Below, piece by piece: positions 41,913 to 42,586 of a stretch of 64,000 bases of DNA. Origin of the DNA: Convolutriloba macropyga (lineage: Eukaryota); NCBI RefSeq assembly GCF_964194025.1, contig NC_134482.1, forward strand, positions 27,156,001 to 27,220,000, given 5' to 3'. The notes beneath the pieces were generated by a model. It saw only the letters and a list, made by a program, of their open reading frames with translations. It searched no databases and was not told the DNA's origin. Within the stretch, counting starts at the first letter, position 1. The number at the start of each line of letters is the position of its first letter. The translations under genes were made by a program, and so were the position numbers.

Positions 41913-42586
41913 ATGGTTTTCATATTAGCTGCAAGTTCACTTCATCACGCCATAAAAACTGCGCCTCAAGTAACACAAAATCGTTACAAACGTAACGTTT
42001 ACGCATTATCGGGTTTAACGCTTTGAAAGTCCGAAAAACAGAGCAGTTCCAGTTGAGTCATTTCTTTCATGATAAGAAGCGCCTAGTTATATGGCATGAT
42101 GTATTGTACAATTCGCTTTCACGTCATCGAAGCAACAACAATAAGCCTTTAACGCCTTCGCAGCTTATTTCAGTGCTTGAAAACTATCAGGAGCGCATAG
42201 AAGCTATAGTGTATTGCCCCAGAGAGGGAACTCCTGATATCTACGATCAGCTCAAGCGTAGTACTCTAGTTGCCATCCATTTAGTGAAAGACATTGTGTC
42301 TAGACGTAAACAGAAAGATCCTAGTTTACTTAAAGAGTACAGAGCATTACACCAAAGGCCTGCGCTTGAGCTGAAAACACTCACTATAGTCTTAGCTCAT
42401 AAGAACAACCTCCGGTCCTTGATAACACGCTCCCGACCGAAGAAACTTTCAAAGCACCGTCGTAAAACGAGTCGCACCCGTCATGCGTTCGAGGAGGCGG
42501 AACTCACACAAGCCTTTGATAACCTGAATGTCACTTGGTCTTGCGCTGTTGTGGGAGTCTACCCGCTGACTGGCGGTGTGACTTAG
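41913..42586 (+). pseudogene. Extra ORF in the leader of element B; SGNH/GDSL-hydrolase-like fold inferred; one frameshift near 42023
   Basis: ATG at 41913 gives MVFILAASSLHHAIK...YALSGLTL*. The frame then shifts into the 187-codon ORF 42023-42586 (LVIWHDVLYNS...IEAIVYCPR...YRALH, basic tail). Motif spacing resembles SGNH blocks I, II, III and V. The ORF is seen directly; the fold is an inference. Confidence 0.6.

Follow-up and report, generated by a model that had tools for sequence, protein, structure and literature searches.

A decayed gene with a predicted SGNH-like fold ahead of gag in a BEL/Pao retrotransposon of Convolutriloba macropyga, and its homologues in LINEs

The stretch of DNA analysed here, hereafter the window, comprised 64,000 nucleotides of Convolutriloba macropyga (NCBI RefSeq assembly GCF_964194025.1, contig NC_134482.1, positions 27,156,001 to 27,220,000 of the forward strand). 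A first-pass annotation made from the letters alone had proposed that the segment 41913-42586 encoded a degenerate SGNH/GDSL-like accessory protein in a long terminal repeat (LTR) element. The segment was enclosed by a 10.4-kb BEL/Pao LTR retrotransposon (40325-50732) and was a decayed copy of an extra gene of about 212 codons, which was located between the 5' LTR and gag and is termed ORF0 here (ORF, open reading frame). ORF0 was positioned within a leader of 3 kb, at about 1.2 kb from the 5' LTR on one side and from gag on the other. The features of the element are given below.

40320..40324, no strand: left target-site duplication ATAAT, identical to the 5 bases directly after the 3' LTR
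40325..40697, plus strand: 5' LTR of 373 nt, paired by blastn with 50353-50732; the alignment sets both ends
40702..40709, plus strand: TGGTGCCG, resembling a primer-binding site, TGG-initiated, 4 nt 3' of the 5' LTR, read from the sequence
41913..42026, plus strand: N-terminal piece of ORF0, 37 codons and a premature TGA (42024-42026), aligning to residues 1-36 of intact paralogues of 212 amino acids
42015..42016, plus strand: site of a 13-base gap, the cause of the frameshift, from a DNA alignment with four intact paralogues
42023..42586, plus strand: C-terminal piece of ORF0 as listed, 187 amino acids, in another frame; homologous part 42026-42535
43317..43498, plus strand: 54-nt tandem repeat in 3.4 copies (TRF), in the spacer between ORF0 and gag
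43789..50362, plus strand: decayed gag-pol with DUF1759 gag, aspartic protease, reverse transcriptase (RT), Peptidase_A17/RNase H region and integrase, delimited by tblastn with the polyprotein of the intact copy L001
50353..50732, plus strand: 3' LTR of 380 nt, from blastn with the 5' LTR
50733..50737, no strand: right target-site duplication ATAAT, matching the left copy

The two LTRs were 94% identical over 382 columns (blastn). The Pfam domains detected between them were DUF1759 (BEL/Pao gag), aspartic protease, Peptidase_A17 and the integrase zinc-binding domain. The LTRs, the target-site duplication and the gag-pol domain set, which included DUF5641, placed the whole element in BEL/Pao and bore out the LTR setting that the first-pass annotation had proposed. 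The closest named relatives of gag-pol were barnacle proteins, with an identity of 33-34%. The 2270-residue polyprotein of L001 aligned with the gag-pol of the window in four pieces and three frames (tblastn). The frame changed at least three times, seven or more stops were in frame, and the alignment had a gap of about 232 nt at 44345; the element is a dead copy. The motif TGGTGCCG recurred about 20 nt downstream of its first copy, and from the position alone we infer a role as primer-binding site. The 54-nt repeat was GC-rich and was kept between copies, as it was also present in L001 (11373-11681); in the window, several spurious ORFs of considerable length overlapped it on both strands (43215-43749). 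No Rfam match was found in the window.

The two pieces of ORF0 contained the strings quoted in the first-pass annotation. MVFILAASSL and YALSGLTL were read from the ATG at 41913, whereas LVIWHDVLYNS, IEAIVYCPR, YRALH and the basic tail were located in 42023-42586. The N-terminal piece held the positions of the SGNH blocks I (A-A-S-S in this subfamily) and II (S-G-L). A database search with the 187-residue ORF returned 208 close homologues at 90% clustering, which were mostly 210-212 residues in length. Because the N-termini of the homologues matched the upstream piece, the two pieces were once a single gene. The program-made ORF list had missed this N-terminus, as the first-pass annotation had pointed out, and the 36 upstream codons matched the beginning of the 212-residue proteins. 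The proposed join across one frameshift was also correct: four intact paralogues aligned through the site and the window was without 13 bases at about 42015/42016, so the frameshift was real and not a chance join. Moreover, the stop position of the family (42536-42538) was a sense codon in the window, which gave a read-through of 16 residues according to the DNA alignment, and the conserved Asn at N70 was replaced by Tyr. The window copy of ORF0 is a pseudogene and is unable to make the protein.

The linkage of ORF0 to gag-pol was evaluated in other BEL/Pao elements. ORF0 was located 0.2-1.3 kb upstream of a BEL/Pao gag-pol and on the same strand in L001, L002, L007-L010, L012, L013 (two elements) and L014, and it stood ahead of gag-pol in at least six lineages. 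L001 was an intact element, in which LTRs of 100% identity enclosed ORF0 (212 residues), a 1.3-kb spacer and an uninterrupted gag-pol of 2270 residues. L007-L010, which belonged to the same family as the window, presented ORF0 and then gag-pol on the same strand. In L002, ORF0 was 52% identical and pol 63-69% identical; the ORF0 identity was 37% in L012, 45% in the two adjacent elements of L013 and 47% in L014. In the Tara Oceans contig L006, an ORF0 of 31% identity followed the end of pol after about 850 nt. The ORF0 identity across the BEL/Pao loci thus spanned 94% down to 31%.

The selection on ORF0 was measured as the ratio of nonsynonymous to synonymous substitution rates (dN/dS; Nei-Gojobori). 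The pairwise values were 0.18-0.46 for the window copy and five intact copies. These copies had been picked as intact, which excluded stop codons but did not by itself lower dN/dS. The differences by codon position were 233, 194 and 468 for the first, second and third positions, respectively, so that third positions carried twice the changes. Against L001, the dN/dS value was 0.23-0.35 for ORF0, 0.17-0.30 for pol and 0.28-0.50 for gag; ORF0 was situated between pol and gag. ORF0 is an integral gene of the element under purifying selection, and with the 208 homologues these values supplied the intact, constrained ORFs that the first-pass annotation had anticipated.

That the ORF does not belong to the element, having arisen as a nested insertion, from a captured piece of a host gene or by chance in the leader, has to be considered here, because the first 0.8-1.1 kb after the 5' LTR was not common to other copies and relatives of ORF0 also occurred outside BEL/Pao elements. 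However, all BEL/Pao loci examined had the order of ORF0 and then gag-pol on the same strand, even at an ORF0 identity of 31% and within identical LTRs, and dN/dS was well below 1. A foreign ORF is highly improbable in view of these results. Synteny and dN/dS ruled out a chance ORF and a nested foreign insertion. The leader segment that other family copies did not share extended from 40698 to about 41480-41800 and contained a (GT)13 run at 40961-40986; the homology of the other copies with the window began only 100-430 nt 5' of ORF0.

Two further observations were made on the intact copy. When L001 was compared with L007-L010 and the window, two N-terminal sequence variants were seen at ORF0 codons 17-29, and the dS of ORF0 against L001 (0.16-0.34) was higher than that of gag-pol (0.12-0.21). 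The variants and the higher dS of ORF0 suggest recombination between subfamilies. Furthermore, the gag-pol frame of L001 ended 13 nt into the 3' LTR (18732-18744).

The extent of the ORF0 family was explored with a profile of 26 close copies, which was scored against 1.84 billion cluster representatives. A total of 735 clusters (50% identity) were obtained at E ≤ 1e-3, and 402 of them had E ≤ 1e-10. The members were nearly all stand-alone proteins of 185-230 residues, and the ten clusters that were sampled came only from ENA and Logan assemblies. No relative of ORF0 was found in a scan of viral contigs. Two loci had an unusual arrangement. The Tara Oceans contig L005 (806-2155) carried two identical ORF0-like genes of 205 residues head to tail with a 732-nt period, which may reflect either a tandem array or an effect of the assembly. 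In L022 (83-4205), an ORF0-like fragment was located 1.3 kb downstream of a 781-residue ORF with a PIF1-like helicase and a GIY-YIG nuclease, a pairing that is itself out of the ordinary.

The conserved columns were determined from a diverse alignment of 78 members, which were 29-51% identical to the first sequence, three close copies aside. The column numbering is that of the intact copy P0002, and counts are out of 78. In block I, the conserved columns were G6 (54/78; Ala in the subfamily of the window), A7 (73/78), S8 (73/78) and S9 (61/78). Most members thus had G-A-S-S, and the LAASS start was a trait of the window subfamily. G34 was kept in 74/78, within P-G-L-S-x-N directly after the strand 29-31 of the model described below. 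The block III region read W-H-D-x-x-N-N-S, with W65 in 73/78, H66 in 75/78, D67 in 71/78, N70 in 64/78 and N71 in 70/78. H150 was present in 72/78 members, and the next residue was often Pro, which matches the canonical H-P. The other kept columns were H76 (67/78), N79 (64/78), Y104 (72/78), R107 (68/78), S133 (69/78) and E156 (69/78). In the last 25 or so residues, the median content of Lys and Arg was 43%, and it reached at least 30% in 65/78 members.

Relatives of ORF0 were also found in long interspersed nuclear elements (LINEs). The ORF0-like gene was the first of three ORFs there and was followed by an ORF with a PHD/FYVE-type zinc finger, or with no match, and then by an ORF with an apurinic/apyrimidinic (AP) endonuclease and RT. 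In L018 (384-4841), which was obtained from a metagenome scan, an ORF0-like gene of 38% identity preceded a 327-residue ORF and an 895-residue ORF with AP-endonuclease and RVT_1. L024 (10001-14716) contained an ORF0-like gene, a 399-residue PHD-finger ORF and a 958-residue endonuclease-RT ORF; the PHD finger scored 27.6 bits, above the cut-off of 24, and the same ORF also held a weak CCHC knuckle. L025 (218-4971) contained an ORF0-like gene, a 321-residue ORF with a FYVE/PHD-like zinc finger and a 993-residue RT ORF. Moreover, an ORF0-like gene and an ORF with a weak PHD match were found in a tandem unit of 4.9-5.2 kb in L003 (4068-12574) and L004, where each unit also held an inverted partial copy of ORF0; neither RT nor gag-pol was found within 20 kb of these loci. 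The position upstream of ORF2 in LINEs, which is that of the ORF1 protein (ORF1p) esterases, was therefore observed for the relatives of ORF0 and not for the window copy. No coiled coil was found ahead of the domain in ORF0.

In a maximum-likelihood tree of 83 members, the LINE-linked P0132 (L024) and P0168 (L025), together with P0135 (L003), fell in one clade of 38 members with a support of 97/98. The BEL/Pao-linked members were outside this clade. The LINE-linked member of L018 grouped weakly (76/99) with a set that included the BEL/Pao-linked P0176. The tree had an arbitrary root and only about a dozen members of known context. The ORF0 family is common to BEL/Pao and LINE elements by direct homology. 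Since the relatives of ORF0 are themselves located in LINEs beside a PHD ORF1, the link to the non-LTR esterases that the first-pass annotation had drawn is closer than an analogy.

The fold of ORF0 was evaluated via AlphaFold2. The model built with the 78 diverse members had a predicted local distance difference test (pLDDT) score of 96.5 and a predicted template modelling (pTM) score of 0.87; that built with the 26 close copies had a pLDDT of 44 and was unused. Strands were predicted at residues 3-6, 29-31, 62-64, 99-104 and 124-126, with helices alternating along the sequence, and a long C-terminal helix at 184-208. The five strands alternating with helices agreed with the three-layer α/β/α architecture of the SGNH/GDSL superfamily. 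In a Foldseek search of the PDB, ranks 1-21 were SGNH/GDSL-type enzymes or close kin, comprising PAF-AH Ib alpha, GDSL-like lipases/acylhydrolases, LAE5, acetyl-xylan esterase and the peptidoglycan O-acetyltransferases PatB/OatA. The E-values started at 2.5e-3, the probability was up to 0.99, and the template modelling (TM) scores were 0.40-0.49 over about 200 columns. The top matches in BFVD were SGNH/GDSL hydrolases of phages and giant viruses, with similar scores. The basic tail, which was outside the domain, lowers a TM-score that is normalised by query length.

The conserved columns were distributed on the model as follows. Ser8 was positioned where the helix following strand 1 begins (block I), Gly34 by its sequence position after strand 2 (block II), H66-D67-x-x-N70-N71 after strand 3 (block III, in which there was no Gly) and His150 in the loop after strand 5 (block V). 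The block assignment of the first-pass annotation was therefore in keeping with the order of the strands in the model and with the conserved columns of the family. The Asn role of block III could be played by N70 or by H66, judging from sequence position. The spacings of Ser-Gly-Asn-His in ORF0 were 26, 36 and 80, beside 34, 29 and 84 in TesA (PMC10792757) and 22, 30 and 87 in ZfL2-1 (PMC3905857).

The best explanation, which we consider reasonably probable, is that the window holds a dead copy of ORF0, and that the intact gene encodes an SGNH-like Ser8/His150 module working like the ORF1p esterases of CR1/L2 elements. According to the predicted model, Ser8 would be the nucleophile and His150 the base, and an oxyanion hole may be formed by Gly34 together with His66 or Asn70/71. 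By analogy with the known element esterases, the remodelled site, which is without both canonical Asp residues, might act at a membrane, where it would bind a lipid or another ester or remove its acyl group. The Lys/Arg-rich tail might in the same way bind the RNA of the element or acidic phospholipids, and domain and tail together may be useful to the assembly or trafficking of the particle or ribonucleoprotein.

A number of results weigh against this explanation. Neither PDB nor BFVD gave a Foldseek match at E ≤ 1e-3, and the root-mean-square deviation (rmsd) was 5-8 Å; hence, the predicted fold is consistent with SGNH but the match is only moderate. The residue before Ser8 was Ala in 73/78 members, and this position is occupied by Asp, Asn, Gln or Thr in each of 30 representative SGNH structures (PMC10792757). 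The position three before His150 was R, K, Q or S and never a conserved acid. Both canonical Asp residues were therefore absent, block I reading G-A-S where G-D-S is canonical and the D-x-x-H motif being lacking. ORF0 departed from SGNH in two defining features, in that block V had no Asp and no curated model recognised the protein. No SGNH family was returned by Pfam for the 78 members at E ≤ 0.1 or for three members at E ≤ 10, and Pfam searches with the window pieces, three intact members and all 78 members gave only sub-threshold noise for ORF0. Sequence searches of the PDB with a single protein and with profiles retrieved only designed helical repeats and antibodies, all insignificant. When the 78-member alignment was compared by hhalign with E. 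coli TesA or with a TesA profile, which was shallow since the TesA database search returned only close orthologues, the probability was less than 1%, and the weak alignment pointed to another register of the blocks. Moreover, the assignment of Ser8, Gly34, His66, Asn70 and His150 to blocks reflects sequence position and strand order rather than spatial geometry. Even for ZfL2-1 ORF1p the role is unsettled, as this protein was dispensable in a HeLa assay (PMC3905857). The SGNH fold that had been proposed was thus upheld by the prediction (pLDDT 96.5 and SGNH/GDSL at the top of Foldseek), but not by the Foldseek statistics or by Pfam, PDB and hhalign.

These scores could also be produced by a generic three-layer α/β domain of the flavodoxin-like type, whose likeness to SGNH would be superficial and whose job would be unrelated, e.g., that of a regulator or an anti-silencing factor. 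The Foldseek E-values of only 2.5e-3 to 5e-2, the TM-scores below 0.5 and the failure of all sequence and profile tests for SGNH membership speak for such a domain. However, two independent libraries were topped almost exclusively by SGNH/GDSL proteins and not by CheY, flavodoxin or Rossmann proteins, the matches spanned about 200 columns, and the conserved Ser, Gly, Asn and His were located after strands 1, 2, 3 and 5, as in SGNH enzymes. The relatives in LINEs next to a PHD ORF1 argue in the same direction; the title of Kapitonov and Jurka (2003) pairs the esterase with the PHD domain in CR1-like elements (cited in PMC3905857). A generic domain is accordingly improbable.

A closer competitor, and the one favoured by the first-pass annotation, is a non-catalytic scaffold derived from SGNH and comparable to Oskar, in which the polar residues hold the fold or a ligand and the Lys/Arg-rich tail binds the RNA of the element. 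The loss of both canonical Asp residues would be expected of it, and the Ala before Ser is without counterpart in the 30 SGNH structures (PMC10792757). The basic composition of the tail was conserved, and esterase-containing ORF1 proteins have no RNA-binding domains, for which Arg-rich peptides have been proposed instead (PMC3905857). The OSK domain of Oskar (5a4a), whose fold is likewise SGNH-like, is an RNA-binding domain in which the active-site residues are non-canonical. However, Ser8 and His150 were each kept in 72-73 of the 78 members at an identity of only about 30-40%, and such near-invariance is unexpected if the catalytic pair is dispensable. Oskar, a germ-plasm protein of the host, has itself lost the nucleophile Ser (PMC10792757) that ORF0 retains, and it was not among the first 50 Foldseek matches. 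The hairpins that the first-pass annotation had suggested as a possible ligand did not adjoin the ORF: no inverted repeats of at least 14 nt were present in 42550-43800, where only the 54-nt tandem repeat was found. A non-catalytic scaffold therefore appears rather unlikely. The description of the protein as degenerate is doubtful; the family lacks only the two Asp residues and keeps Ser, Gly, Asn and His almost without variation.

The explanation of ORF0 as an SGNH-like Ser8/His150 module was further compared with known retroelement systems. SGNH esterases have been described in the ORF1 proteins of CR1/L2, RTEX and Penelope-like elements (PMC3905857). The ORF1p of ZfL2-1 (PDB 4c1b) has genuine though weak esterase activity and binds acidic phospholipids as well as liposomes, and a Gag-like membrane-targeting role was proposed by its authors (PMC3905857). 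ORF0 resembles the esterase (ES) domain of CR1/L2 ORF1p in that an SGNH-type domain of a retroelement is placed upstream of the polymerase gene, in that PAF-AH Ib and TAP are the closest cellular structures, and in that Arg/Lys-rich peptides accompany the domain. In ZfL2-1, the transposon-specific His191 is located four residues before Asn195 and is paired with S228 (PMC3905857). H66 and N70 of ORF0 have the same four-residue spacing, which is suggestive as a likeness of spacing. The differences are also clear. Ser, Gly, Asn, Asp and His are strictly conserved in transposon ORF1p esterases (PMC3905857), and the ES domains, unlike ORF0, keep the full Ser-Asp-His triad and the G-D-S and G-x-N-D blocks. 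The ES domain follows a coiled coil within ORF1p, whereas ORF0 forms a protein of its own, which starts with strand 1. The structure 4c1b was not among the first 50 Foldseek matches of ORF0. Furthermore, the hosts of ES are non-LTR and Penelope elements, whereas the host of the window ORF0 is a BEL/Pao LTR retrotransposon.

SGNH-type genes in other retroelements were considered in the same manner. The rotifer Vesta LTR elements and Athena Penelope-like elements carry a GDSL esterase/lipase as ORF3 (PMC5408684). ORF0 resembles Vesta ORF3 in being an accessory ORF of SGNH type that an LTR element carries, and in being a type of ORF common to different retroelement classes. Vesta ORF3 is located downstream of pol in Ty3/gypsy-like elements and has the canonical invariant residues, whereas ORF0 is upstream of gag in BEL/Pao and its blocks are non-canonical. 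In the tree of these authors, the non-LTR esterases were outside the Vesta/Athena ORF cluster, and independent capture was inferred (PMC5408684). In contrast, the LTR-borne ORF0 is directly homologous to LINE-borne copies. The tyrosine-recombinase retrotransposons of the Ngaro type also carry an SGNH-hydrolase ORF (PMC9210276), which is similarly an extra ORF of unsettled function in a retroelement. Unlike ORF0, it follows the recombinase gene, in another element order, and is recognised by standard domain models. Among cellular enzymes, PAF-AH Ib alpha (3dt6, 1vyh, 1wab) and bacterial GDSL acylhydrolases (3p94, 1yzf, 5jd3) were the best structural matches, with a probability of 0.98-0.99 over about 200 columns and a similar size. 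Their identity to ORF0 was 12-14%, with TM-scores of 0.40-0.46 and an rmsd of 5-8 Å. These enzymes have canonical catalytic blocks and no basic tail, and ORF0 is the reverse.

SGNH esterases were thus known before in CR1/L2/RTEX LINEs and in Penelope-like, Vesta and Ngaro elements, with an unsettled role. In the limited full-text literature covered, no report was found of an esterase or an extra ORF upstream of gag in BEL/Pao. BEL/Pao elements with a gene ahead of gag constitute a third major setting for retroelement SGNH-type genes, and the same module serves elements with target-primed and with cytoplasmic, particle-based reverse transcription. We put forward, tentatively and with less than even confidence, that ORF0 represents a branch of esterase-fold proteins in retroelements that had gone unrecognised (735 or more clusters at 50% identity), which has an active Ser/His site without Asp and was moved as a cassette between CR1-like LINEs and BEL/Pao. 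If such an active, mobile cassette exists, a step directed at lipids or membranes would be a shared need of two mechanistically different retroelement classes. This raises the enzymological question of whether an SGNH site can work without the Asx motif and the triad acid. Moreover, the family is large and strongly conserved but is missed by standard domain models, and annotation pipelines would therefore label it 'hypothetical'. The window locus itself is ordinary, being a dead copy in a dead element.

Other repeats were observed in the window outside the element. Three units of 91-98% identity, with the same small ORFs per unit, formed a tandem array at 34995-38905, the period being about 1292 nt; a diverged partial unit of this array was found 9 kb upstream (26160-26956). 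A direct duplication of 2317 nt with 98-99% identity was present at 27324-31422, and its minus strand held integrase-core (rve) ORFs (27324-28028 and 29715-30344). A short way past the 3' LTR, DUF5641, which is the C-terminus of BEL/Pao pol, was found in an ORF of the minus strand (52539-53078). The repeat families of 51839-53078 recurred at 58.2 kb and at 59.6-60.9 kb (58180-60956), and both regions are probably remnants of further BEL/Pao copies. Positions 18449-18648 were a run of 200 N.

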